Shown: positions 2,851 to 38,079 of the stretch, piece after piece
How positions within the stretch are numbered: position 1 is the first letter of the stretch
Layout of the letters: every line of letters begins with the position of its first letter
Translations under genes and position numbers: made by a program
Origin: Takakia lepidozioides
Lineage: Eukaryota > Plantae > Bryophyta
DNA length: 64,000 nucleotides
Assembly (NCBI GenBank): GCA_030704615.1
Contig: CM060734.1
Coordinates: 26,722,001 to 26,786,000 of the forward strand
Direction of reading: 5' to 3'
The notes under the pieces: generated by a model
What the model was told of the DNA's origin: nothing
Database searches by the model: none
Seen by the model: the letters and a program-made list of their open reading frames with translations, nothing else

Positions 2851-3611
2851 TGTATCATGGGGTGTTTTCCTATTTGTATTCCTTCTCGCATTCATGCTAG
2901 CAAGTTACCTTACTGTCTATGATTAAGTATCAGATTGCTTCTGCAATCTACCATGTTCCATCTACTCAAGCATTCATTCCACAGCTTCACTCATATCTCT
3001 CTACACCGTGTGAGTATGAAATAGGAATCAGATTTATATCTATCATGTATCAGGCTGAAGCCATGGTGTCTCTATTCTGCCCTACAGTACATCTCTACAG
3101 CTTGCATGTATCAAGCATCATCTCGTCGTATCTCCTCCTCTGTGTAATCTCCATCCCTGTGCTCCAAGATCGTGCTCTCCGCCGTGATGCCCGAAGCGAT
3201 CTTCCAGAAGTGATGTCCAAGAAGTGATCCTCTCCATGTCGCTACTCTGCCTATTCTACCTGCAAGCTATTCTAACCACCTAACTAACTAACTGTCATCC
3301 AAGACAGAACACATGTTCCCTCTGCAGATGTCGTTCCCACACAGTCGTTCCCTATGAACGTTGTGACGGGCTGTGCCAAGCTGTGTCGGGCTGTGACTAA
3401 CTGTGTCACGCTGTGTTAGGCTGTGTCTGATTGGGATAGGCTGGGTCTGACTGTGACAGGCTGTGTCAGGCTGTGACTGTTGACTATGTGAGCCTGTCTG
3501 CCACCCTTAAGGCCTGTGTCTATCAGAGTCTACTACCCGTAGGTCTGCGCAAAATTAAGGGTACCCCACATAACCCGTAAAATTGTCTAAGTCCCAGACA
3601 GCCCTCTAACA
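2851..3611 (-). mobile_element. 3' LTR (761 bp) of minus-strand Ty3/gypsy element
   Basis: Minus strand begins TGTTAG (3611) and ends GATACA (2851); immediately preceded by a polypurine tract. Confidence 0.8.
3361..3490. repeat. 10-bp period tandem array (ctgtg-n5) inside the LTR
   Basis: ctgtgccaag ctgtgtcggg ctgtgactaa ctgtgtcacg ctgtgttagg ... about 12 units. Confidence 0.85.
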
Positions 3612-3628
3612 TTATCCCTCCCCTTCTC
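3612..3628 (-). promoter_or_regulatory. Polypurine tract (PPT)
   Basis: GAGAAGGGGAGGGATAA on the minus strand directly abutting the TG of the LTR. Confidence 0.8.
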
Positions 3629-3708
3629 AAAAAGCCGTGTCATCACGGTTTACTGCTTAGGATCAGCAAACCTTTGTGAACGAGCACCCTTCTGCTGGTG
3701 AGAGTCCC

Positions 3709-14600: not shown

Positions 14601-17379
14601 CATAACATGGATAAGCGTATACACCGTCAGGTGGCCTTCGAAGCTGCTGGTGTAGTGAGCTTTGAGTTGACGGGTGGAATGAGCATCCTGGGGCTGGATG
14701 CGGTGGGCCCGGCGAGAGAGGAGGTACCAAGCCGTCGCAGAACAACTCTTTGCAGCAGATCCACTAACTTACCCCTAGCTAGGTGTTTAGCACCGTCTCC
14801 CGCCATAGCTCGTCCAACGGCCCTTAGCTGTGCCCTGCAGCCTCGCAACACCCCGGCTTTGCTCTACCTCGTTCATAAGACTCGCCTCTTCTCTACGCGT
14901 CTTTTAAGCTATCTCTTGCTAATCTTTTTAGCGATCTCGCCCTTGAGGAAAGTAGGAAAATGGTGAAACCCTATGGATTTAGTCATGACTAAGATATTTA
15001 GTAGAGACTGGCGCCTTCCCCCAGGAGCTGGTCTATTTGATGGGCATATACTTGGTGTAAGCTATGATTGGCGTGTACAAGATTTTTCCAGGGCGATGCC
15101 CATATCCTTGAAACACTTACGCGCCCTGTAAAGGGCTTGTTCCTTGGGTATATCAGTGTCCCTGTCAAAACGAATCGTAATGTGTGGTGGTGAAGTGGGA
15201 AGGCCCGAGTTGGGATCCACTTGCGTACCTTTAGGAAGTTGTGTCAGCGGGTAAAATTGCCCTTCATCCGGTCGCACTGCTAGAAAAAATAGCTGAGGAA
15301 CATGGGGGAATGCATTTGGAGTGTACCTCATTTCATTATTTTCCGAGGGGCGGAGGCCCAGACGTTGGAGCTTGAATGGGGAGCGGTCTTCTTCTATGAG
15401 GGGTAGAGCCTTGTCGATCGCTACCTGTTCCAACACCGCATAGCCCATCCAGAGTGCCAGAAGAGTTGGGAGAGTCTCCGAGTAGGAGCTGGTCCTATAT
15501 GTTGGTTCCTCTGGATTTTTTGGGGTCGGAATGGTTGTTGTCCGCCTCACTGTCAAATTCGTTGGAGTTGCGTTTGGCGCGTGGTTGGAGTGTCATCTGC
15601 TCCGTTGGTGAAGTAAGAGTAGTTGGTTGTGGGGCCTGTTGTTGCCCAGGTGCTTTTAATGGTGAGAGGTCGCCATGCCGCCATGCGATAGCTTGTTGAT
15701 GGTATGTGATGGGCTCTATGCAGAGCTGGTGTGGGCCTTGGTGGACTTTGGTGGGCTATGTGCCGAGCTGGTGTGATAGGCATCGTCGTTTGCAAAGAAT
15801 TGTTCGTCCGAAGGATGCATGTCGCTGGCATCCATATCTCCTTCTTGTTGATATTCCATGCCGTCTTCGCCTTCCATATTGTGTGCCTGTGCTTGGACCT
15901 GTGTGGCAGATCTAGGGGTAGATTGAGAGCGAGTATGTGGTTTTTTGCTACGGGTTTCGATGTTAGATTTGGAGCGGGGTTGTTTTTGAATGCTACCCGC
16001 TCCCTTCTGAGTGCTACCTAACCTTGAACTAGACATGCAAGTGGGATGGGCAGTCGTGTTGGGCAGTAAAGGTAAGGCAAATAGACGGAGAAGAACTCTC
16101 TGGGGGGTTGGGTTGGGGCAGGAAGTGGAAGGCTGGGGATACGCGTGGGTGTTGCAGGCGAGGAGCAGAGAGAGGGGGGGGGGGCTATGAGCAGCGAAGG
16201 GTGACTGCGAGCAATATATAGGGGGGGGGCCAGGGTGGTGGCTCTGTATCTGGCGGCGGTGGCAGTATAACGAATTCATAGTGACCGTTATCCCATTATG
16301 CTTTGGGGGCGGTTGTATAATTCTGGGTTGTGATGGGGTCTTATGGTGAGGGCTTTGGTTTTGTGGGGGTAGTGATGGCTCGGCAGAATGCAACGGGGAT
16401 TTATGTACTGAATGTGTGAGCTGTAGACGAGGTGACTTAATGGTAGTAGACAGAGGGCATGAATGTGGGTGGGAGGGGTGGGTGTGTGGGTGGGAGAAGC
16501 TATGCCTATGGGCTGAATTTGGTGTTAGGCGTGGTCTGATGTTATGTAGTAAGAGGGCGTATGGCTGTTGCAGAGAGACAAGACGAATGCGTGTACTGAC
16601 ATGGGTTTTATTGGCATGAGTGAGAGAGAACGGCGTGTTATGGGGAGGTTTAAGGAGTCCCCAACTATGAATCTGGGTAATTGATACTTGGCGGAAGGTG
16701 GCAGGTGGGTTTGATTGCTTGTGTTTTGTTCCTGGTACATTTGTTATAGAGTAAGGTGTGGCATTTGAGGTGGTGCAAGAGGTTATGTGGGGGAGGGCTG
16801 ACTGGGCTTTGATTTGGGTTTGTGGTGGCTGCGGGCCCAGGCATATGTGGCATTGGGGGCTGCGGAGCCAGCATGCTCGGTGAAGGGACGGCGAGGCTGT
16901 CGAGTTGGGAGGGTGTCCTGATTGGTGGCATCGATGAGGGAGATGAGGGGTTGGATTAGACCATGTGGGTTATGCAAGTATGACGCCTCCCAAAGGGAGC
17001 GTAACTTATGGTGTCACTTCACCACAAGGGCTACTGCCTTCCAGCTGAAAGGTGGACACCGTCATGACACACCAGACCGTGGTTTGAACCCACAACCACA
17101 TCCAATGTGGTATGTGCCCATTACCACTAGGCTACATGCTAGTTGTCGTGGGTTATGCATTTTAGGGTGGGAGGTGGTAGAGGATATTGAGAAGTTGAAA
17201 ATGAAATTGTAGATGGTATTGGCTATGTCTGGTGCTTCATGAGCCGACAGGTGGGCACCGATTCGGATTATGGTAAGATTGATTGAGTTTATTGAATTAT
17301 CACATGACCACCCTAGAATTTGTGGTGGAGATGGATATATGTTTGGGTATGGTTTTGGGGTTAGCATTAAATTGTAGGT
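11690..17379 (-). mobile_element. Decayed 5' portion of a LINE of the same family, including ORF1 copy 2 N-terminus (15050-15830)
   Basis: ORF 15062-15556 (FPHVPQ..RPDEGQFYPLTQLPKGTQVDPNSGLP..ITIRFD) aligns with ORF 17283-17972; strongly C-rich sense strand; boundaries approximate. Confidence 0.6.
16977..17147 (-). mobile_element. tRNA-derived SINE copy 1 (~171 bp) with 12-bp TSD
   Basis: A box TAGCCTAGTGG (17134-17124), B box GGTTCAAACC (17090-17081); GTGGGTTATGCA duplicated at 16965-16976 and 17148-17159; homolog at 38284-38456. Confidence 0.85.
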
Positions 17380-17409
<30 letters not shown>

Positions 17410-17410
<1 letters not shown>

Positions 17411-18979
17411 TGTGCGCAATCACCTGCAAGACACCCAAGAGCTACTGAACCAAGAAATCAGCAGCGAAAAGAAAGCCCTCCACCTTTGGTACGACTTCCT
17501 GAATATGGAGATCTACGCTTATGAAAACAACAGGCCTACTATTATTGAGCACCGAACTTTGGAGGAGCTCCTACTGCTGGGCATCCCTCCCAGAGAATGT
17601 GACGAATTGTTACACTGCAAGAAATCCTTCCCACGGGTGCCGCAGAGGCTCTATCCTGCCACCCGCCCCGATGGCCAAAGTGGTCAGTTTCTACAGCTCA
17701 TGCAACTGCCAAGCGGCACCACGGTCGATCCTACCACAGGGCTACCAGCCCACCCCTATCATGTGATGATAAGATTCGACACCGAGGCTGAGCTCCCACG
17801 ATCGCTCGTTCTCACCCGGGCAACTCAACGCTTCTCAGACATGGACATAAAGCTGGGTAATGTCCTCTACTCCCCTATTTCTGTCTATTCCAAGCCCGCC
17901 ACACAGATTTGGTCTGGGCTTCTAAAGGTCGAACTGATGCATCCCAAAACAGATGGTCTGGCCCTGCTCTGAGGCGACAGAGCCTTTGTTCTGGAAACAG
18001 AACCTGGAGTCAAACTACAAGGAAAAGTAGAGAAGTCATTCGATCTCAATGCATCCTCAGACAGGATGTCGTTGTACTTTACTGACGATACTCTACAAGG
18101 CACAGTGGGTTCTTAGGTGGCTATGCACTTCATAACCGAGACCTTTGACCACGGTGATAATTTTGAGATCCTCCACGTGACCAAGCCCAATCCCGACTCA
18201 TCTTTTGGCTTCATCAATTTGGCAACGGAAGACACCCGGACCAGAATATGAAGCTAGGGATTCGCATTGATAACGTGCTCATCAAGCCACGCATCAGGAT
18301 AAAAAAGCAAGGCAAAGCGGGAACCCGTGGAGCCAACGCAGATACCATGGCCGAGCGTAATGCGCTCACCATAGTGGCGAAGAATCTAAGCACGATGCAC
18401 CCGCAGCAATCCATTCTTGCCGAGCTCCACAATCTTTTCGGCCCTGGTAACATCACTCACACTCATTTTTGCAGTTACATTGCTTTCTCGGAGACGTCCA
18501 AGCATTTGGGCATGCTTCATATTACCTGTAAGAACCCTACAATCTACACTAAGTGGTGTAGCAAGCCAGACTTTGAACTCCATGGCAAGTTCATTACGGT
18601 CACCCCCCCCCACAACAGTATCAATGGAATCACACCGCCGGATCAGGAGCTGCTCGACAAGCTGAAGGTTTCTAATATTTACCAGGCTCTGTTTGACACT
18701 GTTGAGTCAATCTCTATCCAACCCGCTCCCAGGCAGGTAGTGGGCCACGTCGAGTGGATGCAAGAAATCAACAAGAAGCTTGAGGCTCACTCCATCTCCA
18801 TCAGAACCGACCTACGTAACAACATCAATGATATGGAGCACAGGCTATCTGCATCAGTCAACAACCAACAACTTGCCTATCATGAGTACATGATATCTCT
18901 GCATAAATCCATAATGGATAACCTCGGCCATAATCTGGCGAATTTTTATCATCGTGCGGATCTCGTCCTTGCTAATCTC
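17410..18979 (+). pseudogene. LINE ORF1-like protein, copy 3 (most complete)
   Basis: ORFs 17283-17972 and 18248-19051 plus intervening GKVEKSFDL / FEILHVTKPNPDSSFGFINLATED; in-frame TGA/TAG stops and a frameshift. Confidence 0.75.
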
Positions 18980-21424
18980 GGCTTCCAACTCTGTATGAAG
19001 CAACTTCACTTCATGCAATTTGCCTTCATGCTTCACCTGCAACTGGTATAGTTGTTGCTTATGTACTTCATGCAACTTCTCCTGCTCCAGACCTGCTTCA
19101 ATCAAGTTTTCTTTCGCAAGTTGTAGAGCAGATTGAGTGTCCTCCAACTCTTTCTGCAACTTAAGGTTAGCCTCCACATCCACCTTATTTGCACACTCAG
19201 TGGAAATTCTTGCCTCAAACTCTTGCTTCAAACTCTTGCTTGAGCTCCTCCCTCAATGCTGCCAATGTGTGGAAGGAACATGGGACTTCACATAGGTGCC
19301 CAACAAATTAAGTGTCCTGCTTATGGACCTCATAAGCATGGCCTGCTATGGATCTTCATGGAGAACTTGCTGCTGTTCTCCCTGATCCTCCACAGTTTGA
19401 TGTTTCACAAACCAGTCAGGCCATGATCCCACAGTATCTTCTTCCTGAGCAACCTCATCCTCCACAGGTGCTGCAGTTCCTTTGCACTCTACCCCTTTAA
19501 CCTCCGCCATAGGTTTGGGCATAACTTGCACAACAGGGATTCCCTTGGTCAGACTCTGCATCTTTGGTACTATTGGTTCTCCGACCATGCTAGAGTTTTC
19601 ATAGAGAATGTCACCCTTCTCAATTTCCGCCATTACTTGCTCTGTAGTGGGAATGTCCAACCCCTCTCCCTCCACAGTAAGAGGCTCCGGTGTGACAACA
19701 TGTACAATCTGAGTTACCCCTGGGGCAACCGGGTCAACTTGCTGTGATGGCTGTGGTACTGAGGTGACTTCTTCCTCCCTTGCCGAAGGCCGTGCTTCCA
19801 GTAACAACATCCCCCTGTGCTGTTGCTCCTCATCCTGCACAGGAGCTATGGAAACATCATCCTGTGGATTTCTTGTGGCCAGGGGATCCGCCACTATAGT
19901 TGCGTCCCTCTTCTGTCTCTTGGAATGGCGCTGCCCCTCCAATCCCTCTTCACCTTGTGAAGAGCCCTGCTCCTCAACTGCAGTTGTGGCTGTCTCAAAC
20001 ACCCCCATTAGTTTGCATTCTCGCGCATCAAGCAAGCAAAAATAAAAAATAATTTGTGCAATAATTGGGCCAGACACAATGATCGGGGACTTGGCAGTAG
20101 TATTTTGTAACCGTTTCATCTCCTCCACCAGACCACTGTACATCATCTCCGCCCAGGCTACATCGTCCCCTCTCAAAGCTTTCAATACCTCCTCCGTGAA
20201 AGATCTGTTAAGATACTGTTGGTTTTGTTTCATGGCAAACAAAATGTTCAGTATTTGGCCAATTTTCCTCAACCCTGGATACTCGGCCTTGGTGCAGGTG
20301 AATCCCTGGTTCCTAAAGAAACTCATTTCTTGGAACAGATCCCCTATTTGCAATCTTGCCCTATGCTCATCCACGTTCACATGACCAGATGGTAATTCAA
20401 ATAGTTGTTGCAAGTACTGTGGAGTAACCTCTATATCTACGCCCTTCACCTAGATAACTCCTGTCTGAGGCTCGAAGTTCTGGATGAATTGGATCATCAA
20501 CCCCCGATGATGCAAAGACCACTCTTTACGTAGCAACCCCTCCAATCGCAGCTCCTTCAGCAGCTGCACTGCCTGTGGTGTAGCGATTGTCTGCTTCTGT
20601 AGAATCGTCGTGCTCTTCACCCTGAGATCCTCCATCCCTCTAATTCTCTTCATCCCGGACAAACAAGAAGGCCTTGTTTGGAATAACTGTAGGAAAGCTT
20701 GCAGGGCGTAAAGCATGAAAATATGGTTGGCACAGAATGGAACAGGCAAGTGAGTGTAAGCCTGTGGGGCTTGCAAATAGTGAGTGAGAGAGAATGTACT
20801 TTCAACCCGTCCGTCCTTGCGCCACTGCGTAAGAAGTAGAGCTAGCGTATAGTCTGTGATATCCACCATAGCTACAAAGCTATAGCTTTGATTGCCCCTC
20901 CCGTCGAGACGCTGGTTATCCGGAGCGACCCCTACTCTTCCGCTCATAACTTTTTTAATTTCTTGTTCTTGTTTCTTGAATGGAACCACTTGCATAAAAT
21001 TCACGTTGCTGATTGGCCGTTGCCTCATTGGGTAACTTCTCAATTTTACCCTTATCTGTTCACATTCCAACTTGGAATGCCCACTAGGATTGCATATGTG
21101 GCAAAGGTCCCCCTTTGCCGGACGCGTAAAGGGTTTTGTTACTTGTCCTCTGGACGCATTAATGGGCCCGTAATTAGTTTCGGCTGATGTACCGGTTTGG
21201 TACTTTGACGGCCCTGTTTGTCTTCTTGCACGATGGTGCCCACTATTGCAGTATATGCAATGCGGAGTGCTTTGCCCCTTAGGCCACGTGTTTGAATTCA
21301 AACTCTCTCCCGTCTCCCTCTGTCCGTGTGGCACATTCTCCGAGTTTGACTTCCAAACTGCCTTTACACTCACCGGCCACTTTTCTGACGTTAACCCGCG
21401 TCCACCTGTCACTGACCCTATGGA
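18980..21424 (-). mobile_element. LTR-less internal fragment of the Ty3/gypsy additional-ORF region (paralog of ~5500-7870)
   Basis: Colinear nucleotide and protein similarity to 5500-7870; CHICNPSGHSKLEC knuckle; LMIQFIQNFEPQTGV.*VKGVDIEVTPQYLQQLF. Confidence 0.9.
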
Positions 21425-21892: not shown

Positions 21893-23100
21893 CACTAGAA
21901 GAAAAACGCGGAATAACCACTGGCCCTTTAACCACTACTGTCTTTTCCCACTCTATAAACCACTAGTAACCACTTGCCAGTGGTTACTCCCGATGAAATG
22001 CCACGGTGGCATCACAGATAGTGGTTGGAAGTGGTTTCAACCACTCAGTAGTCCATGTGTAATAATTTGTTTCTATTTTTTATTTTTTATTTGGTGACAT
22101 ATTTTAATTAATAAATATAATATTCCACGTGGACGAGTACAGTGGTACATTGTGAGTGGTTATAGACACCTCAGTGATGGGAAGTGGTTGAAACCACTTG
22201 CTACTCCACGTGTAATAATTCAAAATTTTATTTATGATTTATGATTTGGAAATCTATTTTAATTAACAAATATAATATTCCATGTGGACGGGGACAGTGC
22301 ACGTTGATCTTGAGTGGTTAAAGACACCTCATTGATTTGTACCACTTTGACAGTGGTGGAGAGTGGGTGGTGAAAGACACTGCAGTAATTGGAACCACTA
22401 TTCTAGTGGTCGCTCATGAGTGGTTGCTTAAACAACAGTGATTGGTACCACTTTTGTGGTGATACATTAAAAACTTTAAGTGGTTTGTGCACCTGTGACA
22501 GACTTTGAAAAACAGACAAGTGTCCAGACCATTGTAGGATGATGCTATTGAACAAATGGTTCCAACAATAAGCTTTATTCTGAATCTGAAACATATTCGT
22601 CACCCTCTGAATCATTTTCCTCAACTGGAATAGCGGTTGGTTATACAAATGCCGCTTAAATGCAGGTAGCCAACATAGCCAGGTCTTCAGTCTCTCATGT
22701 TAGTTCTAGAATGTTAGGTGGTTAAAGACACCTCAGTGATTCGTACCACTTGGACAGTGGTACATAGTGAGTGGTTAAATACACCGCAGTGATTGGTATC
22801 ACTTGGACGGTGGTAGATTGTGAGTGGTTAAAGACATCTCAGTGATTGGTACCACTATTGTGGTGATACATGAAAATGTTTAAGTGGTTTGTGCACCTGT
22901 AGCATACTTAAAAAAACATACAAGTGTCCAAATCATTGTAGGATGATGCTATTGAACAGATGGTTCCAAACAATCAACTTTATTCTGAATCTGAATCACA
23001 ATATTCATTATCTGAAGCACTTTCCTCAACTGGAACAATGTTTGGTCATACAAAACTAGCTTGAAATATGGTAGCCAACATAGCCAACTCTTCTCCACTT
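21893..23100 (+). mobile_element. CACTA (EnSpm)-type transposon end with subterminal repeats; other end not found
   Basis: Starts CACTAGAAGAAAAAC at 21893, followed by many direct and inverted accact/agtggt repeats and larger duplications (e.g. 22430-22680 vs 22830-23090). Confidence 0.6.
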
Positions 23101-23699
23101 AGAGACGTGGCACCATCTAATGACCTAGGTATGGGCTGATCTGATAAGGTAGAGGGTGCCCATAGACCATCAAAATTTGCATTTTCTCCAATGTCCAAAC
23201 TTCAACGATGAATTTTAGAATGAAAATAAATTAAGCCAGTTCCAAAAATACAAAATTTCCAAATAATTGAACTCATTACAAGGCTTGAAAATAGTTGTTT
23301 ACATTTCATTCAAAAAAATTATATGTCACATCTAGTAGATAAGCCTGATAATTTGTGAGCTGTAGCTCCTAGGTGTTTCTTTGTATATTTATTTAAAAAA
23401 AAAAGATAATCTAATATACTTGGAAAAATCTATAGACTTTTTGCAAGAGCCCAAAAATGAGGTGTAGGTGGGTAGTAGAGAGAGAGAGAGAGAAGACTCC
23501 GGCTGGGGCCGGCGTAACTAAGAGCCACTTCGCCTCACGGCTACTGCCCCCTTTCGAGGGTGGGCCCTATAAATAACGCGGTGTCCAGGGGACACCAGTA
23601 ACCTAGGGATAGAGGTATGTGAGGTGCGCAGGGTACCCCGGGACCCCGCATATACAGGGAGCCGTGGGAGTTTAGGGTGCCATGGGGGGATTGGATTAG

Positions 23700-24340
23700 T
23701 TGTCTCTTGTTCGTAATGATAGCTGCAAAGTATCGAAGGGCCGTGAGATGTATGGCCTTAAAACATTTATGGATATGAGATGTCGGGAGGTGGAAGTTGT
23801 CGTGTAAGGCAGCTATGCTGGCGTTGTGGATACCGCCTCGAGTGCCGGCCGAGATAACAGATAGGGGGCTTGTATTCCAACCCCTTCGACGGAGGGCAAG
23901 GATGAGAGGTGCGTACTTTTGTCGTTTCTCTAGAATTGAGGAAGCGGGGTACCGATCGTGACAAAATGTGAATTCGATAAAGTATATAGTGATATGTGGG
24001 GATGGGGAGGTAGGTGGTGGTTTGTTAATGTGTAGTCCATGAACAAGCAGTTAGGGCATAGTCTAGCAGGGCAGGTGCAGGGGGGGCCTCTACATGTGCA
24101 AGGGAGTAGCCACAGGGGGACAGTGTGGTCTGGGGGTTTGCCTTGGTAGGTGCCAACATTAATTAGTGAGAACCAGCGGGTTTCGGATCTCTGCATGAGG
24201 AGCTTGTGTATGTGCCAGACCGCGTGGTTATGGCGAGTTATATGAAGACCATGAATAACCGGGTGGGTGCATTGACTGAGGAGGTGCGGCCAGGTGTCAC
24301 GAACCTGATGGGTGTGTAAATATAGAGGGCAGTATGGTGA
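23700..24340 (-). other. CCHC-type zinc finger and restriction-like endonuclease (RLE) of LINE ORF2
   Basis: CPL..DTWPHLLSQC..ITRHNHAV; then RLCPN / LVHGL..IYFIEFTFCHDRY..EKRQKYAPLILALRRRGW..ISAGTRGGI (frameshift near 24048). Confidence 0.8.
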
Positions 24341-24677
24341 TGGAAAAAGGCGCAGCCAGAAGATGTGTTTGCGTTGATGACCCATATATTGTGCGTAGCG
24401 GAATTTAAGTGTTTGCTTTATTTGAGCATCAGTTGCAGCCGTGGAGTGCCAAAAATAATTGGAGAGTTTGTGATGGAGTGTTGTGGATAGAGTCCATTTT
24501 TTAATGTGTATTTTAGTGTGGCTCATAGAAGTTCGAGCTTGTTGGGTGGCTTCCTTAGTGAGAGTGGTGAGGAGGTTAGGCTTAGGGTCCGGTGGGTTGG
24601 GGATCGGATGGATCAGCCAGAATGGATGGGTGTGTGCTATGTGTATAGGGTCATTGGTGGGTTCCTCTGAGGGCTCG

Positions 24678-25065
24678 AGAGCACCGTTTTGAGCGAGTAG
24701 GTCAGCTGCCTCATTTCCAGTGATACTGTGTGAGCGGACTTTTAAAACGTGGATGGGTTGATCTATGGCAACTGCTAGGTTGGCTATGACGGCGATGAGA
24801 TTCCAATCAGGATGGTGGTGATGTGAGGAGGGGCAAGCAAGGTGGTTACGTATAAGGAAGAGCGATGTAAGACTGTCAGTGAAGATATAGTGGGGGGGGG
24901 GGGGGGGGGGAGGAGGGCAGATGGGAGAGGGCTAGTATGGCCATAGCTCCGCGCGGAGTATGGTGGCCGGACCGGGGAGCCTGGCGGCTGTGCCCTGGTC
25001 CGAAGCAGCATGAAAAACGCCATATCTGGCATTAAGTCCTGTTTGGGAACCGTCAGTAAAGTGTG
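24678..25065 (-). other. RNase H domain of LINE ORF2
   Basis: FTDGS, TILRAEL, YIFTDSL, KVRSH, GNEAADLLA; all four acidic catalytic residues present across a frameshift. Confidence 0.9.
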
Positions 25066-25199
25066 AGTGAAGCGGGGGATATTTGAGGGGCAAAGGTTGT
25101 TGAAATGGCGGGGGGAAGTCGGGTGTAACTGAGGGGGCGGTAGGGGGGTGTGGCGGCGCTTTAATCCATGACTTGCTGAGGTTGATTTTGGTTGCATGG

Positions 25200-25510
25200 G
25201 TGGGGATTGTCTGGCAAGCGTTGGTGGGTAAGTATGAGTATGGTGGTGGATGACGGGGAGGCGTGTGCCGCAAAACATGCCCATTGAAGGGCTTCTTGAG
25301 AGTGGAGTCCCGGGGGGGGGGGGGGGCTAGTCCCCCGCCAGACCATGTGTGTTGGGTGGCAGAGCCTGAGGCCCCGAAGATGCAGTCTCTAGGGTGAGGA
25401 CTGGCGAATGATGTGAGGCTCATAGGACAAGTAAGCGGGTTGGAGTAATAAGCGTGGGTGAGTTGGAAGGAGGTGATGAGGAGGGCGAGTATATCCTGAG
25501 GTAGAACACT
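25200..25510 (-). other. PCIF1/CAPAM-like N6-adenine methyltransferase-like domain within LINE ORF2; catalytic motif degenerate
   Basis: LPQDILALLITSFQLTHAYYSNPLTCPMSLTSFASPHPRDCIFGASGSATQHTWSGGGLAPPP then, after a frameshift in a C homopolymer, EALQWACFAAHASPSSTTILIL; resembles the PCIF1 core as I recall it (LP..VF..L...F....CFASPLNC....YCSAFP..D..FGS.G....SGSFEANPPF). Confidence 0.6.
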
Positions 25511-25980
25511 GTGGGCATAGGCTTGGGAGAGTTTGGTTAGAGATCGTGGCTTTTTGGGAGGGGTGTCCCGAGGGTAGCGGTCAAGAAGTAACATATCTCG
25601 GTAGCAAGTCCTGCCGAGGCGGGTGTAATTGATTGGGGGCGAGGGTTTGGGAGGAATATTGGGCCCACAGCCAAGCGACTCTATCATTGGGAATGAGGCC
25701 AAGAAAGCAACCGTTGGTAGTGTAAATGGAAGACAGTCGGGTGCCGGTAATTATGGCAGATAGGTCCCTAAGAATGTCTTTATCTGGGTTACATTCAGCG
25801 ATGTCAATTTTAATATGAGTGGCAGGCAATGGCCTAGATACATGTCGGGTGTCTTGGGTCTGGGTTTGGGAGATGTGTTGTAGATGTGTGTGTGTGAGAT
25901 AGGTGGTGTTGGTACGTTTATAGAAGGCAGTAAGAAGGGTGAGGTTGTGGTCAGGGTCGCAGTCATCATGCGAGCCAAAG

Positions 25981-26123
25981 AGGTCATCCTCAATTTGCCA
26001 AGTGTTGTCGTCGTGTGGGAAGCCCGCCCATTTGCAGAGGTAATATGTGTCTAAACAGGTGGCACCAAATGAGTCTATGGAAGCCTAGGATTTGATACCA
26101 AGGATGGCTTCAATGATAAAGGC
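25981..26123 (-). other. Chromodomain within LINE ORF2 (one in-frame TAG; absent from the ORF track)
   Basis: Manual translation: AFIIEAILGIKS*ASIDSFGATCLDTYYLCKWAGFPHDDNTWQIEDDL. Confidence 0.85.
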
Positions 26124-26670
26124 ATTTGGGTTGGTGGGGTGAGTGGGGGGAGGGTGGGGTAGGGTGGTGAGGACCAGGGGAGAATTTGGGGGTGAGGGGA
26201 GGTGGGTGTCTACCTCGGGAAGGGACCCGTTCGGGGATAGGGGTGGTGGTTGATGGTCGATGGATGGGGGTATGGTATCGGTGTCATATGAGGATTGAGG
26301 GGAGAGGTTGGTGGGTGGTGGGTTCGTGGGGGGTCATTGTGGTAGAGGCTCGGAGCCATTGGAAGATAGAGGGGGCCGGGGCAGACCTGAACATCGGGAG
26401 TAAATCTTGTGGATTGTGTGGGAATAGTCGGCACGGGAGATCGCACTCCAGGGTGCATGAGATAGATGGGTAGCAAAATAAGGTACGCAAGTAAAGGAGG
26501 AACCGACAGGTCTTAACAGTGGCTTTGGAGTATTTCAGAGTGAATTCGCGTGGGGTGATAAGCTTGGTGCCGGTGGCGGTGGTGAGTTAGGAAAGGTTAG
26601 TAATATGCTTCTCCTTGAAGTATTTGAGGATGTCTCTTTTCTGTCATGGGTGGGCCGCTTCAAATTGTGT

Positions 26671-29329
26671 TCAGAACGGACTAGAGGACCAGGAGATTTC
26701 TAATGGGGATACATTGTTAGGATATCTTGGCAGATCTGTTTGGAGGCTAATATCTGGGAGGGAGAATGGGGCAGCATGGAAGGCATACTGGATTTGTGGT
26801 TTTAGAACTGATTGGGTGATTGCTAGTTTGGGTCTGATGGGAATAGGGGATTTGAGAAGTGCCAAACTTTTGTTAGTGAGCTTGGTAAGTGTGGTAGATT
26901 TTTGAACGTTCCAATTGAGTGACGGGACAAGCTGTATACCTAAATATGTATAGGGTTCGTCTGGTCCTAAGAAGGGGAATGGGCTGTTTTGATATTGTAT
27001 GTAGAGTTTGCAATGGGATTCGATCGCGGCGCGGGTAAGCTTGATGTGATAGGTGGCTGCTGTGACTGCGCATTTGTGAAGGCTGAGTTCCATACCAGAC
27101 CATTGGTTAAAGCGAGACAATTTGTCAACTTGGCGGTTAAGGTGCTGGGGCTTATGGGCAAGGATGGCCAAGTCATCCGCGTATGCGGCAGCTGTGATTA
27201 CACTTTGGGAGGTTGTATTGGTAACCAAGATTACCTCGAGCAAACCACCGTAGTAGTGGTTCCAGAAAAATAATGAATAGGTAGGGGCTAAGGGTGTCAC
27301 CCTGTATAGTGCCGCGTAGTATAGGGATAGGAGGAGTAGAGCCATAGTATGAGTCAAAGTATTTTGTGGAGCTATCGGTATATATATCCCTGATAAGTTG
27401 GATAGAGTCTAGTGGGTACCCTAGGTCAGTCATAATTGCAAGGAGTCTGGCATGGTCTAAGGATCCAAATGCATTCTTAAAGTCAATGTATAGAAGGTAG
27501 ATGTCTTGCTTAGTGAGCTTGGCATCCTCCAAGGCTGAAAGTACATACTAGATTTGTCTGGTTGTACTGCGAGTGGCACGGAATCCTTCTTGGGGGTCGC
27601 TGAGAATGCGATGTTGTTCACCGTAGTTGGATAACATTGTGGTTAGCATGCTTGTGAAAAGTTTGTAGATGGTGTTAGCCAGGGCTATAGGGCGGGAATT
27701 GCCAAGGTCCGTAGGGTCCCCCTTCTTGAATAGTAATATGGTACGACTATGTTTCCAAGAGCGTGGTATTCGTTTCAGTTGATAGCAAAGTTTGAAGAAT
27801 TTGAAGAGAAGAAGATGGAGCTGAGGCTCTAGGGATTGGAGGATTGCGTTTGGGATGAGGTCCAGGCTAGGGGCTTTGGATTTAGATAGGGCTTTGAGGC
27901 AGGATTCGTAGAGGTCGATTGTGAAGAGGTCATGGATGCGGTCAAAGGGGGAGCCGCGTCGGTCCAGTGTAAATCCATCTAGGTCGTGCCATGGGTAGTG
28001 TTTGACTTTACACATGCAGGTTTGGTTTTGATGAGATGGGTGTAGACAGTTAGTGGTGGTAGGCGTGTATGAGGTTGAGGCTTGGATCCAAATTTCGGTT
28101 TTGATGTCCGTAGGGTTGGATAGAAGATGTCCATGTCGGTGCTTGAGGCAATCAATGGGCGGGTTTATTGCAGGGTTGAAGATGGCTTTATGAGCTTTTT
28201 TGGGATGGTCATGTATTGTTGATTGAAGGAGGTGACGATTTTTTTGTGATTTTTTTAGGCTTTTTGTTTGGTTATCCGATAGGCAGCTTTTTTGGAGTCC
28301 CTCCCAAGTTTGGATAGGGCAGCAGCCCACATAGGTACAGAGGCAGGGTCCACTAGGGGGGGGCATGAGGGTGCGACATGCAGGGATGTTGTTTAGGCTG
28401 CTGATGCGTGGGTCAGATCGCCAGTTATTGTATGGTAGGGGCAATGAGGTGTTGGGTATGACGGTGAGGGCACGACGCACAGTGTGATAGATGTTCAGGT
28501 GGGAGTTCCATGCCCATTTTTGAGTTCGAGTGAGGCAACCGCCACTTTGTTTTGAGCGAGTAGTTTGGGGAATATCAGGGGGAGCAGAACATGTGGCAAG
28601 GACGCTAGTTGTCATTTCTTGTAGTAGGGAAGATAGTATGCGTTCGGCATCTAGCCAAGTGGTCTCAAGGGAATGCGATAAGTTGGTGTCATAGAGGCTG
28701 TGGGATAGTTGAAGCGTAAGGATGGAAGCCGTCGGGTGGAAGTGGTTGTGAAATGCATTGATGTTTTGTTGGTGTAGAGGGGAAAGAATCCGAGGTTGGA
28801 GGGTGGGGATTTGGGCCATTGGGATTGGTCGGATGGGGATGAGAGATGGGGGAAGGGTGATGGAGACTGGGTAATGGTCTGAGTTGCACAAACTATCAAT
28901 GTGTATGTGACTTCGGAGGTAGGTAGGTATGCTATTGTGTGTGTGGAGGTAGAAACCGTCAATAAGGCTTAAGGATGAGTAGTTGAGGCTTCCTTGCCTT
29001 GAGTAGTGGTAATCTGATGGGATATATGAGAATCTGTGTTGTTGTATGAACTTGGCCCATTCATGGTCAATGGGGGAAGGGGGTTTTGGAAGGCCATTAA
29101 ATGTATGTCCGAGTAGGGCAATGTCCCGGTTAAAGTCACCGGCTAGTATACAATGGCTGTTCAGATTTTCGGGATGCGAGACAGTGTTGGAGATAGTTAG
29201 CAAGATATCTGGTATGAGCCCTAGGTCATCTGTATGGGATGACATGTATAAGTGAATTAATGTAATGGGGGTGACTGGCAGGAGATGGAGTTGTATGATT
29301 TGTAAATGGGAGCGGAGGGGGATAGACAC
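26671..29329 (-). pseudogene. LINE AP endonuclease plus reverse transcriptase
   Basis: ORFs 27548-29329, 27173-27532, 26671-27357: SRPIALANTIYKLF, QEGFR, IDFKNAFGS, RGTIQGDTLSPYLF, AAAYADDL, YTYLGI. Confidence 0.95.
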
Positions 29330-29372
29330 AGGTGGTGTGGGGGGAGTGATGGGATTTAAGGATACCGGAGTG

Positions 29373-31923
29373 TGTCAAGTTATTTGACCACTAGTGTGAA
29401 ACTTGCTAGGAAATAGTTAGTTTTGATATATTGACATTTGGGATTGACCCAAGTGTCAATCCAGGGGCCAATATATGTTTGGGCACTTGGCGTTGTTATC
29501 TTCACGGCAGATCGCGGTGGGCTCATCTTTCTCGAGTTGAGCCTCACCGCGTCTAGCTATGGCGCCATAGTGTCGAGTCCCCATGGCGTGGGGTGCACTT
29601 GGCTCGACTTAATATATGAGTGATGTTTTCATGTGCAAGTATGTGAGTTTGAGAGAGCTTGTGTGCTTGTATCATTTCTTTCTTTATCACTCGAGAAAGA
29701 TCAGCTCGAGTTTGTGAGTGCCAGGTTCGAGTTATAAGTTGTAGCACTTGTGTTTTCAGATCATGAGAAGCGGTTCAGCCTAGAGTGCAAGGATCCGTGC
29801 ATGAGCCTATCCAAAGCGGATAGAGTAGAGTGCAACAAAGGCAAACATGTTCAGGTTTGCAATGGATAGAGAGGCGGGGGTAGCATATGTGAAGAGCGGC
29901 GTTGCATAGCTCAACGCTATGGCAACCAAGTTTGGGCTTCTAGTGTGAAGCAGAGGAGATGCTGGCCACGAGTGGCGAACTGGTGGTCGTCTTCTTCAGC
30001 TGCAGGCCGAGTTAAGGAGCTGCAGAAATGTGGGCTGCGCATGGGAAGCTAGCATGTTGCAGGTTGGAGATGATATAATCAGTTCCAGGTATCTCTGCTC
30101 GAAACTAGTTGTTGCGGGTAGATGAGGAGCAGCCGAATAGTGGAGCTGCAAGGGGATGCATCGCAGCCTGTTGGGAGCTTCAGCTCCAAGCTCATGAGGA
30201 GGTATGAGTGAAGAGAGGGGGCTGGTCCCTCTTGTGTGCAAATCAGTGCACTTGTGAAGCATGTGCTTGAGTTGGAAGTTTTAATCTGAAACTCTAGCAC
30301 GGTGAGGGCTCTTGGACATCGAACGATGGGTTCACCCTTTGAATCAATTTCGATTGACCTGATACTCCACACGTACCTCTGACAAGGTATGGGGCTGGAA
30401 GGGCAGCAACAAGGCGTCCTAGAGCCAGGGAATGTGCCGTAGAACTGCAGGTACACCAAGGTTGAAAAGGTGTGTATTTTCAGATTTGTTTTTGTGAGCT
30501 TCATGAAGAAAAAAGAGCTTGTTGGGCAGCATATAGCTTGCTGGTTGAGTTAGGATGCCTCTGGTGGGTCGTGAGAGCACAAGAGAGCATGGCAGCAGTC
30601 TGGTGGCTTCGCAGAAGCCATAGCTCGGCGGCAGCACGTGCAGGAGCAAACCCCAGCTCGGGGAGAGCTCGGGAACGCGTGGGAACGCCTCGGGAATGCA
30701 TGAGAACTCATGGGGAGTTCCAGGGAGCGTAGGGAACAGTGGCTGTGATGGGCCGTGGGGGCGGTATCACGAGATACCACGAGCCCAGGCCGTGACTGTT
30801 GACCGTGACCATTGACCGTGACCGTGGAAAGCCGTGGTGCGGACACCACGGGTGGGCATGGTGACCAGATGTGGGGGATGGGCGGCCATGAAGGCTCGTG
30901 GGCGTGGTACCACGGGGTATCACGAGGCAGCCAAAAAAATAAATAAATAAATAAATTTCACTCGTTTCGTGGGACCTTGATGGGGAGGCTGGGCTCTGAA
31001 GAACAATGGTTTTGAGCTAGCTGATCCGGCAGAAAAGTCGAAATTGCCTCCCTGTTGCATTTTAACAAAGGAGATTACTTCCCTGTAGGTAATCTTTTCG
31101 GGTTTTCAGCCCAATTCTTAACTATGGGGGAGACCAGCCTGCAGGTAATTCCTTTGGACAGAATGTTGTTGGGGCCTATATGTACCTCTATTTGCTCCAT
31201 TTTTGAACCTTCAGTGAATGGCGTGGTTTCCTGAGGTGGTTCCATTATGAGGGATGGCTGGTGGACGTAAGGAGGCACTGGCAGACCCTGTGGAGGCTTG
31301 CATGGGGCCTTCGAGGCCAAGTTTCATGAGCTCGTGGAGGGCGGTTTGAGGAGTGTGTACAGGATGCTCTCATGGTCATGCAAATGAGAGAAGAGAGGAA
31401 AAAAGAGGGTGTGGGGATATGAGCGTGCTGGGGATAGGCATTGCTTTAGCTTCCCTTCCTCATAGCTTCCCACCTTCTCTGTAGGCCGAGACCTTTCCGT
31501 AGGTGGAAGCAAGAGTCAGTCCAGGTTTAGGCTGGGGTGTCCTTGCAGGAGCAACACAGAGTTGTTTTTGGTGGGGGGGAGTTGTTGTTTTCATTCTTGT
31601 GTTTGGACCCCATCCACACCTGCGTGCTTGATTGTGCGCCATGCTAGTTTTGTGTGGGCGCTTGATTTTATAGGTGGTTGACTTGGGCTTGATCGCTGAT
31701 CCAACCCTAGAGCATGCTGTCGATGGTGAGACTGGGTTGATGACCAGTCAGACCATCTTTGTTTCTCATGTGGTGAGATTGGAGGTGATGACCAGCCAAC
31801 CATGGGAGTGCCTACGGTGGATGCAGGTGCAGGTGCAGGCTATGTTAGGAACCCTAGTATTCCAAACCATAAGCACGCATCAGGTTCTCTACCCGGATAC
31901 CTGTGGAGAGGGGGTTAGAAACA
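29373..31923 (+). mobile_element. Putative long 5' LTR/leader of copy A
   Basis: TG start, blocks homologous to 45458-48414, similarity breaks after ..GGGGTTAGAAACA; no second LTR in the window to confirm the end. Confidence 0.45.
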
Positions 31924-31959
31924 GGTTCATGGACGCGGTTGAAGTGTCAGTTGTCAACA

Positions 31960-33700
31960 CGGAGGTGCCACTAGTGTGGGGAAAGTGCGGTACAAGCACT
32001 AGCGATACTAGCGGGTATACGAGACGAGGTGTGCGGTTTAGGCCACCTTCACCTCTTGTGTTTTCTACGGAAGGTTCTGGTTCGGATTGTGAATCAGGAG
32101 GACTCACACCGGCGGCGCCAGTTGTTTCCTTGCCATTGTTGTGGCAATGGAGGAAATGTATGGAGCTACGAAGTTACTCTGGGGCGGTGGGCACCATTGA
32201 GTGGATGATTTCATTCAAGAGTTTGATAGTTGGTGTGACTTGCAACAAATGCGCAATCCACAACTATTTACGCCTTTCATGGCATGGAAGGGGCTGTTTC
32301 AGCACCTTGAGGGGCCGCCCATAGATGATTACCATGAGTTTAGGCGGGGGCACGATGTTGAGATCGAGGAGTGGAGGATGCATTGGTCACCAGACTATGT
32401 CTCCATCACTAGAGGCACAAGGGCAGCAGCCACACCGGCAGCTGCAACAACAGCTTCCATACGCAGTAGTGGGACTAGTGGTAAAGCAACTACGACATCC
32501 ACCCAAGCTACTGCTGCACCAGCACCAGTGGCTATGCCTGCCTTCAACTCTGTTGTGGAAGTTCTTCGAAGAGTTGAAGAAAAACTACCAGGGGTGAGGA
32601 CAGAGAAGTTGAGGAGCTTGCAAGAGTTCCAATGGAAGCCTACTGAGAGCTTAAGGGAGGCTTTCACTCGCATGAGGTGCTTGATCAATGTACCCCAAGG
32701 GGTTACGGAAGCTCAGGCAGTCCAATTCTGGTACGGGATATTGGACAAGGAATTGAAGAGAAGGGTGCGGGATGCAACTCTCCTACAAGCGGCCCAACCC
32801 ACCTTAGCAATGTGTTTTTGCTGGCAGAGCGGATAGAGCTCAACATGGTGGAGAACGAGTGGTTCATGGGTGGGATTTGTTAAGGAGACACCACGGGGTA
32901 GTGGTGCTCTTAGCCAGCCACTACCTCAACAGGCTCAAAGCAACAAGGGGGCTCAGGTGAAGCCCAGGGAAGGACAGAGAGGACCTCAGATGCAGGGGTC
33001 TCTCCCTTCATTTGTAAGCCAACAACGGGCGGATGTGGTGTGTTGGACATGTGGAGGACCCCATGTTAAGAAGGATTGCCCAGAGGGAGGCAAGAGGCAA
33101 TGGTTGGCATCGGATAGCTTGCACAGTTGCAGTGTGGGCATTGTGGCAAGTACGGGCATGGAGAGGCCCAGTGCTATGGTTTGCATCCTGAGTTGGCGCC
33201 AAGGTCAGTTCCAAGGGAACAAGTGGTGGCGGGTGGCGAGGTGGAGCAGCCCAGAGGACGAGGACGAGGTGGCCAGGCACGAGGTGCAGGCCAAGGGCAA
33301 GCTCAACTTGGCCAGGGACGTGGAGGTCAGGGTGGTAACCAAGGCATGACAAACCGGCTTCAGCAGCTAGAGCAGAGGCTCGCTGCCATGGCTACAGCTC
33401 AGGTGGTACCGGCTCCAAGGCCGGATGGTCCACCTCCTACTCCTGAGGGAGGAGACATGGGAGGCATGGGATTCATGTGCGGGGCAACACTACCACTAGT
33501 GAGGGTGCCATTGCCACTACCACTATGTATGGGCCACCACTTACCACTAGTGAATGGTGCCACTATCACTACCACTGTGGGTGGGGCACCACTACCACTA
33601 GTGCCAGACAACACTACCACTACCACTATGTGCGGGCAGGAGCACTACCACTAGGCAAGTGAGAGGCGCGGCAGAGTGATTCGAGGAGAGTAGCACGAGT
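31960..33700 (+). pseudogene. gag: gag of copy A, frameshifted
   Basis: DDFIQEFDSWCDLQQMRNP, Q..TESLREAFTRM, knuckles CWTCGGPHVKKDC and CGHCGKYGHGEAQC. Confidence 0.85.
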
Positions 33701-34734
33701 TCCTGAGCCACGAGGTGGCAGAGGTGGAGTGGGATCCATAGTGTGGGGAGGCAAGCCGTCAGGCCAGGCTTCCTCAGTCATTCACATTGGCGGAGACAGT
33801 GTCGACGCTGTCCATAGCACATAGTTTTCGCCCGACTGTTACCGAGGCGGAGGTTACTATGCCATTGGGGAGAGCTAAAACGGGCAGCACCACTACCTAG
33901 TGTTGCCAAGGCTACGGAGCTAGTGTGCTGCTGGGGGCGGCCACAGCTGTGTGCCAGGCTCCATTGTTCTCGGCTACCATGATTGCGACACCGGGGGTAA
34001 GACCAGCTGAGGTGTTCAGGCTGGCAGCTACACTCTGTGAGAGTGATTGATGTTGGGCAGAGCTGCTATTGCAGGCTTGGGCCTCACGGAGGTGGATATG
34101 GAGCTGTGCATTTTCCAGATACAGACATCTTTGGGAGGATCAGAGCAGGCTCAGGGCATGACACGGCGTGAGTTGGCTATCCGACTACAGCCGGATCATC
34201 CTACACTTGGCTCAGTGATGAGAGCCAAGGCCATTGTGACAGAGGTGGTCTTGTACGATGTCCTTGTTGGTGGGGCAGTGTTGTACCTCATGGGCTTCAC
34301 CCTGGAATTTTGGGAGGGGATTCAGCTTCCTATAGGCCTGGATGACAGTCAGGGGAGGGCCGGCCTGTGCAGCTCTCTGTGACGTTCATAGGAGGAGGTG
34401 CGGTTGCCTAGTGAGGCAAGATGCCGACACAGGCAACATTCACAGCTGGAGTGAGTTGGCCTGGAGAGTTGCTTGAGGGCAACGCTCATTCAGAGGATGT
34501 GTCATCTCCGGGAGAGCAGGATGACATGTATGGTATGGTGGAGTTGCCTGCCATGGTTGCTCACACTCCATTGTGGGGCTCGAGCAAGGATTTGCAGCGG
34601 GTGCTGATCGACGGGTGCAACAAGCCTGAGAAGAGGCGTTTGTACTGTCAGGAGAGGAGGAGAGTGCGGGGATTGCACCAGGTCCACCTCAGTTGTCACC
34701 ATCGGATACCACACCGATTGTGAGGCAGTAACCG

Positions 34735-35200
34735 GATGAAGGCATTTGCCTTCTGGACTTGTTGGGCGGGCTCAGCACCGAATTGGCTGCTGTTCTGCAA
34801 ACAGCTGTACGAGTTCGACGTTACTTGTATGTGGAGAGGAATGAGACTGCACGATGCGTCTCACTCCGTCATGTTGCTTAATTTGGTGCAAGCAGTAGTA
34901 CCTGAGTTGTTGCCGATGTCTGCAGTTCGTGGATATCAGCAGGCCTTGCCGACAGACATTTCGTTGCTGGGGGCGCAGGATTTGGAGCGGGTTGGCTCCA
35001 TTGATCTGGTAGTGGCAGGTTGGCCCTGCCAAGGGCATTCATTAGCCGGGCATGACAATGGATTGCGAGACTCGAGGTCGGGTCTGTTTTCGGAGATGGT
35101 GCGGTTTTGCGCCACTTACAACACAACAGCTTCATCAACTGTATCTCCAGCATACATCTTGGAGAATGTGCCACTGATGGACGATTCTCAGGCCAGGGTG
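34735..35200 (+). pseudogene. DNMT3-like C5 cytosine methyltransferase, motifs I-VI, copy A
   Basis: Manual frame from 34681: GICLLDLLGGLS..YLYVERNE; ORF 34736-35320: PTDISLL, IDLVVAGWPCQGHS.AG, RSGLF, YILENV. Confidence 0.9.
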
Positions 35201-37860: not shown

Positions 37861-38079
37861 TTACTTCAAAACTTGTGGGAAAAAAAAAAGGAAAATCAGA
37901 AAGATTGTTTTGTGTGAGCACACAGTTTGAAATAGTTTTCACAATTTTGTCACTTGAGCGTATTTCGTTTCGCTGCAGCATTTTCTCAGGATATTTTAGG
38001 AATCTATAAAATATTCTAGTTTGCTTGCATGAGCATGCTCACACACTACCCAACCTCATGGCGAGTAGCCTAATGGTAA

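Follow-up and report, generated by a model that had tools for sequence, protein, structure and literature searches.

What does the minus strand of the window (the whole stretch of 64,000 nucleotides analysed here) encode between 23,474 and 29,372, and do all of the parts belong together? From the letters alone, a first-pass annotation had read a LINE polyprotein with two extra modules, a chromodomain and a PCIF1-like domain, between its RT and its RNase H. The region holds a single degraded, 5'-truncated non-LTR retrotransposon, very probably a dead insertion from a Dualen-type LINE family whose intact relatives have the same layout and in which the middle domains are integral. The order of modules is APE (C-terminal half), RT, chromodomain, PCIF1/CAPAM-like domain, RNase H, CCHC/RHN, RLE and a (CT)n tail. 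All seven protein modules first proposed for this strand are present, in the claimed order and close to the claimed positions. From the 3' end of the element, the features are:

23474..23497, minus strand: 3' tail, a microsatellite that reads (CT)n on the strand of the element (direct reading; blastn self-match solely to (GA)n)
23498..23675, minus strand: 3' UTR; it contains a conserved block and a hairpin with a GNRA loop (stem-loop 23547-23560), from alignment with the 3' UTR of relative L001
23676..24050, minus strand: C-terminal part of the RLE, read in another frame than the part before it; it contains the E and K of PD-(D/E)xK plus the helices after them (41-46% identity to P0047, P0048 and P0137 by tblastn)
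24050-24055, minus strand: PD site, now PN (translation, conserved alignment columns)
24227-24235, minus strand: RHN (translation, conserved alignment columns)
24269-24331, minus strand: CCHC knuckle, its second Cys now Tyr (translation, conserved alignment columns)
about 24683-25063, minus strand: RNase H (translation; tblastn with P0047 and P0048)
about 25167-25907, minus strand: PCIF1/CAPAM-like domain (Pfam PCIF1_WW, weak in the window and clear in relatives)
25313-25324, minus strand: NPPF-equivalent position, a poly-C run with a frameshift
25974-26120, minus strand: chromodomain of the HP1/SUV39 type (Pfam Chromo above threshold)
26230..26748, minus strand: linker and RT-thumb region, degraded and interrupted by several stops (three-frame translation; weak tblastn coverage)
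about 26749-27724, minus strand: RT (Pfam RVT_1 on three pieces; tblastn 41-58% identity)
27725..28864, minus strand: APE-RT linker, conserved in relatives (continuous tblastn match with P0001 and P0002) and matching no Pfam family
28865..29372, minus strand: C-terminal half of the APE, where the element is cut off (Pfam Exo_endo_phos_2, about 28865-29332)

The copy is heavily damaged. In-frame stops interrupt the RT (27545-27547), the chromodomain (26085-26087) and the RNase H (24932-24934), and the reading frame changes at least five times (near 27205, 25520-25590, 25300, 25190 and 24000-24050). The RLE domain is split by a frame change, and its CCHC and PD motifs are both mutated. Within 25980-27287, 4 gap letters separate the window from short-read contigs of the same sample, and a few of the frame changes could therefore be assembly errors. 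The N-terminal half of the APE and everything upstream are absent, and no homology to the 5' ORFs of relatives adjoins the truncated end. The window copy is a fossil, capable of none of the functions proposed below for the element; claims about function use relatives at 40-55% identity, all of which are metagenome sequences. The family is highly repeated, with 2,856 and 3,648 contigs in two runs of the source sample aligning at 80% identity or more. At the 3' end (23487-23570), summed contig depth is higher than in the element body by a factor of about 50-100, and the hairpin there differs from that of L001 by one compensatory pair (C-G to U-A).

Pfam detects the window APE as Exo_endo_phos_2 (E 0.003) and the RT as RVT_1 (E 9e-11 and 3e-8), and relatives align by tblastn at 43-45% identity along about 700 aa from APE through RT. 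The APE is complete in relatives: L003 matches Exo_endo_phos at 3e-11, and in L001 the N-terminal motifs lie upstream in the same frame. The RT matches R2 (2e-31) better than L1 ORF2p (6e-16). RNase_H is found in relatives at E values of about 1e-13 to 1e-15 (about 2e-14 for P0047 and P0048). At the C-terminus, the alignment with relatives has conserved columns at C58, C76, R88, H89, N90 and P148. An AF2 model of this part of a relative (P0047:430-715, pLDDT 79) has R2 proteins as all seven of its best PDB matches (E 3.5e-7 to 3e-3), with PD-(D/E)xK cap-snatching nucleases ranking after them. The combination of APE, RLE and RNase H that had been claimed is therefore borne out by Pfam, tblastn, motif alignment and the predicted folds of relatives.

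The chromodomain is recognizable even in the damaged copy. The piece at 25584-26084, after the internal stop, matches Pfam Chromo (PF00385) with 28.9 bits against a threshold of 25.1 (E 1.1e-6), and the relative P0049 reaches 41 bits (E 1.8e-10). The P0049 chromodomain aligns to SUV39H1, CDYL2, HP1 and LHP1 chains, and residue for residue with SUV39H1. In translation, the aromatic cage of the window copy is complete, with a Phe before the I-E-x-I-L strand and a Trp and a Phe in the K-W-x-G-F strand. The L001/L002 lineage has lost the third of these aromatics. Of the proposal that the element reads histone methylation, the chromodomain itself is thus real, with all three cage aromatics kept, and a role as a histone-methylation reader is plausible.

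For the next domain, the window alone gives a weak signal: in this badly damaged copy, PCIF1_WW (PF12237) scores 18.2 bits against a gathering threshold of 31.1 (E 0.002). Relatives score 35-51 bits (E 1e-8 to 2e-13), several of them passing the threshold, and a family profile matches PDB chain 6irx at E 2.4e-7. The six best PDB matches of an AF2 model of P0049:47-330 (pLDDT 82) are all CAPAM (E 4e-10 to 2e-8, probability 1.0, query TM-score 0.52-0.57), and the next match is ZCCHC4 at 2.7e-3. When the domain of the L003 lineage is compared with the ESM Atlas, the best 30 matches are all PCIF1_WW clusters, with a top score of 0.96. No WW family match was obtained in Pfam scans of the window pieces or the relatives.

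CAPAM activity requires NPPF, and mutation of the motif Asn/Asp or of the aromatic residue inactivates CAPAM, METTL16 and METTL5 (PMC8287941). Aligned to ANPPF of 6irx, none of about 118 family members has the NPPF tetrapeptide, and none has DPP[YFW]. Most have HP(H/P)(N/T), with counts of 25 for HPHN, 8 for HPHT, 4 each for HPPN, HPPY and NPEY, and 1 for NPPL; the closest relatives of the window copy have HPPN, HPPD or IPPH. The His-Pro is strongly conserved, nearly invariant, and the flanking motifs SPL-x-C and D-x-x-FGS-x-G are common to the family and CAPAM. Between L001 and L002, the PCIF1-like core has a dN/dS of 0.077 and the chromo-like domain one of 0.072; the values for APE, RNase H, RLE and RT are 0.095, 0.062, 0.049 and 0.016, respectively. 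Because dS is saturated (>1), the ratios are only qualitative. Judging from these values, the PCIF1-like domain is under purifying selection, and from its motif it is probably a non-catalytic relative of PCIF1.

Could it nevertheless be catalytically active, with a divergent form of motif IV, and methylate the cap-adjacent adenosine of the element's RNA or an adenine of the DNA into which the element inserts? The conserved CAPAM fold and flanking motifs, the strong purifying selection and the near-invariant His-Pro would suit such an enzyme, as would the four HPPY members, the four NPEY members (which include the full-length L003) and the one NPPL member. PCIF1, moreover, can methylate DNA in vitro (PMC9178792). 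Against this stand the lack of any member with NPPF or DPP[YFW], the loss of both the Asn/Asp and the aromatic residue in the window lineage (PMC8287941) and the verdict that related domains of DIRS1 elements are inactive (PMC4738411). We regard an active enzyme as unlikely. Some lineages may be catalytic, because HPPY fits the loose consensus [DNSH]PP[YFW] and NPEY occurs. Of the suggestion that the element may write or bind adenine methylation, then, writing is unlikely in this lineage, where NPPF is replaced and the window has a poly-C run and a frameshift, and binding seems much likelier. A wider proposal is that the PCIF1-like domain and the preceding chromo-like barrel are ancestral and universal in Dualens from algae to land plants and have been missed by annotations, with the NPEY and HPPY lineages still active as adenine N6-methyltransferases. 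This seems rather doubtful to us; if true, Dualens with NPEY or HPPY would modify their own RNA cap or the DNA at insertion.

By domain layout and tail, the family appears to be of the Dualen/RandI type, a clade that reportedly goes back to Kojima and Fujiwara in 2005. Dualens, the only LINEs known to have two nucleases, occupy the point where the RLE-type and APE-type LINEs part, and they are still obscure. A Dualen-like layout could also have arisen by convergence, if an R2-like or other RLE lineage gained an APE, or an APE lineage an RLE. Two absences fit this idea. The Josephin-like protease of algal Dualens was not detected in the upstream ORFs of the relatives, and no long target-site duplication was found: active Chlamydomonas Dualens produce long, variable ones (PMC9977147), and here there is no direct repeat between the 2-kb flanks, which is weak evidence in an old copy. 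However, APE and RLE together have been reported solely from Dualen (PMC9977147, PMC4640811), and published Dualens have their modules in the same order, APE, RT, RNase H, CCHC, RLE (PMC5029228). The greater likeness of the RT to R2 than to L1 is expected given the basal position of Dualen, and the element ends in the simple repeat (CT)n rather than poly(A), as green-algal RandI elements end in (ATT)n and (CTATTT)n (PMC3747384). Convergence is distinctly unlikely.

Among the metagenome relatives, single open frames cross all of the domain junctions: RT and chromo-like domain share one ORF in P0174, RT and PCIF1_WW in P0173, Chromo and PCIF1_WW in P0049, and PCIF1_WW and RNase_H in P0047, P0050 and P0073, and P0137 (1289 aa) reaches from the end of the RT into the RLE. 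In the distant relative L003, one frame of 2360 aa holds APE, RT, PCIF1-like domain, RNase H and RLE (Exo_endo_phos 3e-11, RVT_1 1e-31, PCIF1_WW 1.6e-13, RNase_H 3e-13), with CCHC, RH(D) and PD..E motifs. Intact relatives thus encode APE, RT, chromo(-like) domain, PCIF1-like domain, RNase H, CCHC and R2-type RLE in one long ORF, and so the chromodomain and PCIF1-like domain are original, selected parts of the element rather than captured debris, integral and conserved. The alternative that fragments of a chromodomain gene and a PCIF1 pseudogene, or separate elements, are nested in an ordinary LINE can appeal to the stops and frame changes that riddle the window copy and to the unrecognizable stretch at 26230-26750 between RT and chromodomain, but it is almost certainly wrong: many relatives, at 20-60% identity, show the same order in unbroken ORFs, the inserted domains are under selection equal to that on the enzymatic ones, and the element has no internal repeats or second tails. 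Nested insertion, which the first-pass annotation had itself raised, is ruled out because the relatives' ORFs run uninterrupted through all junctions.

Taken as an integral set, these modules suggest how an intact element would work. The two nucleases would drive target-primed reverse transcription, with the RT recognizing the 3' UTR hairpin and the (CT)n tail. The chromodomain, with its HP1/SUV39-type cage, would tie the RNP to methyl-lysine chromatin, and such tethering might give insertion a heterochromatin bias like that of chromoviruses. The PCIF1-like domain, with the CAPAM fold and without NPPF, would most likely have no catalytic activity and bind either the (capped) RNA of the element itself or a PCIF1 partner, by analogy with the role proposed for its DIRS1 counterpart. 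LINE biology would thereby gain two testable functions: chromatin-guided non-LTR insertion, and the handling of RNA or its cap by a cap methyltransferase that is dead or has diverged.

Among known systems, Dualen/RandI elements (Chlamydomonas Dualen-4b_cRei, PMC9977147; cryptophyte Dualen-1_GCr, PMC5029228) have the same APE, RT, RNase H, CCHC and RLE polyprotein and, in common with the present family, a simple-repeat 3' tail. Published Dualen schemes show APE, RT, RNH, RLE and a Josephin-like protease, with SET and C48 peptidase added in cryptophytes (PMC5029228, PMC9977147), and the SET methyltransferase is a precedent for an accessory chromatin-type module (PMC5029228). None of these schemes names a chromodomain or a PCIF1-like domain, and we found no published description of any LINE with this layout, in agreement with the initial impression that the full architecture is undescribed. 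Records of the clade come from just two groups, green algae (PMC4438587) and cryptophytes; its known range would also grow if the host belongs to the seed-free land plants.

The R2 protein (PDB 9NL2, 8GH6, 8IBW) is the best RT match and has a C-terminal CCHC, RHN and PD..E..K nuclease of the same predicted fold, but it carries N-terminal zinc-finger/Myb DNA-binding domains and lacks APE, RNase H, chromodomain and PCIF1-like domain. Chromoviruses (Ty3/gypsy; Gao et al. 2008, cited in PMC5348765) likewise use an HP1-type chromodomain, plausibly to guide insertion to chromatin with methylated histones; theirs ends the integrase, whereas here it lies between the RT and PCIF1-like domain of a non-LTR element. 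Cellular PCIF1/CAPAM, the cap-specific adenosine N6-methyltransferase (PDB 6IRV-6IS0), provides the sole strong PDB matches and the same modelled fold; in the present family, by contrast, no WW domain (the RNA polymerase II CTD binder) was detected, NPPF is replaced, and the domain is embedded between chromodomain and RNase H. The closest precedent comes from tyrosine-recombinase retrotransposons of the DIRS1 type, whose MT domain was assigned to the PCIF1 clade, judged inactive and proposed to bind the template transcript or mimic PCIF1 (Iyer, Zhang & Aravind 2016, PMC4738411). A PCIF1-clade domain in a retrotransposon polyprotein is therefore not new in itself. A Rossmann domain of that clade sits there with its catalytic positions substituted (PMC4738411), in elements that use a tyrosine recombinase where the present family has APE and RLE nucleases. 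With the family described here, retroelements would have recruited the PCIF1 fold a second time, the first case being DIRS1.

The minus strand at 23,474-29,372 carries one non-LTR retrotransposon, recognized by translating the three frames and by running the stop-free pieces against Pfam. From its 5' end, the window copy comprises:

28865-29332, minus: C-terminal half of the APE endonuclease, the 5'-most piece
between APE and RT, minus: conserved linker
26749-27724, minus: reverse transcriptase (RT; RVT_1, E 9e-11 and 3e-8)
between RT and chromodomain, minus: degraded stretch
25974-26120, minus: chromodomain (the piece past an internal stop scores 28.9 bits; Pfam threshold 25.1)
25167-25907, minus: PCIF1_WW-like segment (E 0.002 in the window, under threshold)
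24683-25063, minus: RNase H
24050-24331, minus: CCHC knuckle, RHN and PD site
23676-24050, minus: rest of the restriction-like endonuclease (RLE)
3' end, minus: 3' UTR, then a (CT)n tail at 23474-23497

With relatives as tblastn queries, these pieces are colinear with the relatives, in alternating frames. We found no further copy or internal repeat of the element and no Rfam family in the window, and no target-site duplication within 2 kb; ten other long ORFs have solely transposable-element or RING-finger matches. The coding strand is strongly depleted in G (14% in the window copy, 23477-29372, minus strand; 12% in the metagenome relative L001, 10001-16167), which gives the proteins a high content of Pro, Thr, His and Asn. 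Even lineages that evolve under purifying selection show this bias; the lineage of L003, a GC-rich distant relative, does not. At 12001-18000 and 30001-38000 the plus strand has a strongly positive GC skew, up to 0.54, as it also does over the Dualen copy. The first two intervals, where tblastn with ORF2 proteins found no family ORF2 homology, may hold other G-poor minus-strand elements.

The window copy is dead. Stops lie in frame in the RT, chromodomain and RNase H, the frame changes at least five times, one cysteine of the CCHC knuckle is gone and the PD site now reads PN. The APE N-terminal motifs, which in L001 stand directly upstream in the same frame, are absent together with all sequence further upstream, and nothing like the 5' ORFs of the relatives adjoins the copy. 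Over most of the locus, short-read contigs from the same sample show 0-6 differences from the window; within 25980-27287 they have 4 gap letters relative to it, so a few of the frame changes might be assembly errors.

In full-length relatives, unannotated 5' ORFs lie upstream of APE (3154-4233 and 4480-5106 in the metagenome relative L002). Window ORFs at 17283-19051 (plus), 36993-37817 (minus) and 1855-2637 (minus) are homologous to them (25-33% identity, E 1e-13 to 1e-16); at 17.3-19.0 kb both types are present in the same order. These ORFs resemble pieces left by further elements of the same type. L001 also has a 2A-like ribosome-skipping motif (D-I-E-P-N-P-G-P) upstream of APE at about 9000-9050; such peptides are known in other APE-type LINEs (PMC3708506). 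At the other end of the window copy, an 88-nt (approximate) 3' UTR module at 23483-23573 has a summed contig depth about 50-100x that of the element body and numerous loose ends at its borders (23483-23487 and 23570-23573), which fits either a tail common to abundant SINEs or extreme 5' truncation. The module holds a GNRA-loop hairpin (23547-23560) that is kept in the L001 3' UTR with one compensatory pair, C-G to U-A. Just past the element's 3' end, 22000-23100 contains nested repeats: a block of about 400 nt is duplicated and encloses a 53-nt unit in seven copies (63-88% identity). Elsewhere in the window, a plus-strand ORF at 51005-52270 matches C-5 cytosine DNA methylase (PF00145, E 4e-9) downstream of a retrotransposon gag-matching ORF (48455-49807); the pair is consistent with a Ty3/gypsy element carrying a DNA methyltransferase. 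The L001 contig also bears a 1114-aa DNA_methylase gene.

Searches with the window pieces and relatives returned about 180 related proteins, every one from ENA/JGI metagenomes; word-index protein searches gave no match from an annotated eukaryotic genome. Natural intact relatives were used below in place of a consensus or repaired ORF.

In the family alignment of the C-terminal part, the conserved columns are C-x2-C...H-x4-C, RHN, PD, an I-E-F strand and K-x2-K-Y. An AlphaFold model of this part of one relative (P0047:430-715, pLDDT 79) has strong PDB matches to R2 retrotransposon proteins only (3.5e-7 to 3e-3), followed by PD-(D/E)xK cap-snatching nucleases. The RT is closer to R2 proteins (2e-31) than to L1 ORF2p (6e-16). 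The first-pass annotation had proposed a dual-endonuclease element, and the order APE, RT, RNase H, RLE, with an RLE fold matching R2, bears this out. APE, RLE and RNase H in this order form the Dualen layout, and the APE/RLE pair has been reported solely from the Dualen clade (PMC5029228, PMC4640811, PMC9977147). Judged by architecture, the family is probably a member of this clade; the window element also shares a simple-repeat tail with RandI (PMC3747384). No Pfam domain, and no Josephin-like protease, was found by Pfam in the 5' ORFs (L002 1801-5106) or in the related protein P0003.

The chromodomain of the window lineage is canonical. That of P0049, the closest relative with an intact PCIF1-like part, aligns residue for residue with SUV39H1, CDYL2, HP1 and LHP1, and in the window chromodomain each of the three cage positions is aromatic. 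In L001 and L002 the chromo-like domain has diverged, with no Pfam match and the third cage aromatic lost. By analogy with chromoviruses, the chromodomain would target the element to methylated chromatin.

A profile built from the PCIF1-like domain in 28 family members matches zebrafish and human CAPAM (6irx, 2.4e-7; 6irv, 1.2e-5), sharing the SPL-x-C and D-x-x-FGS-x-G motifs. The top six PDB matches of the P0049:47-330 model (pLDDT 82) are all CAPAM (4e-10 to 2e-8), and the seventh is ZCCHC4 (2.7e-3); in relatives, structure and profile uphold the PCIF1-like identity first read from the sequence. In the ESM Atlas, the L003-lineage domain falls among PCIF1_WW clusters (30 of 30 best matches, top score 0.96); P0137 residues 440-1289 gave RNase H clusters only, below 0.9, which is uninformative. 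Between L001 and L002, dN/dS is 0.077 for the PCIF1-like and 0.072 for the chromo-like domain, in the same range as the enzymatic domains (0.016-0.095), values that are qualitative only because dS is saturated. The earlier suggestion that the domain may write adenine methylation fares poorly. The catalytic tetrapeptide NPPF occurs at the aligned position in none of about 118 family members, where the variants include HPHN (25), HPHT (8), HPPN (4), HPPY (4), NPEY (4) and HPPD (3); the nearest relatives of the window copy carry HPPN, HPPD and IPPH, and the copy itself a poly-C run with a frameshift. Conservation of His-Pro at this position and the existence of HPPY and NPEY speak for a catalytic methyltransferase, which we nevertheless consider improbable. 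Most likely, the domain is functional but, in the window lineage, not a methyltransferase.

Every domain junction is bridged by single ORFs in relatives:

P0174: RT and chromo-like
P0173: RT and PCIF1_WW
P0049: Chromo (E 4e-9) and PCIF1_WW
P0047, P0050, P0073: PCIF1_WW and RNase_H
P0137 (1289 aa): RT end through RLE end

L003 (24% identity) has a single open frame of 2,360 aa with Exo_endo_phos (3e-11), RVT_1 (1e-31), PCIF1_WW (1.6e-13) and RNase_H (3e-13), as well as CCHC/RH(D)/PD..E motifs. Because these relatives keep the domains in continuous ORFs, a composite of separate nested insertions, the alternative raised by the first-pass annotation, is excluded. A chance-match reading was rejected alongside it.

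Dualen elements in the literature contain APE, RT, RNase H, RLE and a Josephin-like protease (PMC9977147; bioRxiv 10.1101/2021.04.23.441226), and those of cryptophytes have SET and C48 peptidase in addition (PMC5029228). We found no paper joining Dualen to a chromodomain, or PCIF1 to non-LTR elements in this sense, in line with the first-pass annotation, which knew of no description of the full architecture; the preprint of Boulias et al. does not mention retroelement PCIF1 domains. The closest precedent for the PCIF1-like domain is the methyltransferase-like domain of DIRS1 retrotransposons, which Iyer, Zhang and Aravind assigned to the PCIF1 clade and judged inactive (PMC4738411), so capture of a PCIF1 fold by a retroelement is not new in itself. 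Their proposal is that the DIRS1 domain either attaches to the template transcript or acts as a PCIF1 mimic (PMC4738411), and by analogy the domain of this LINE would do the same.
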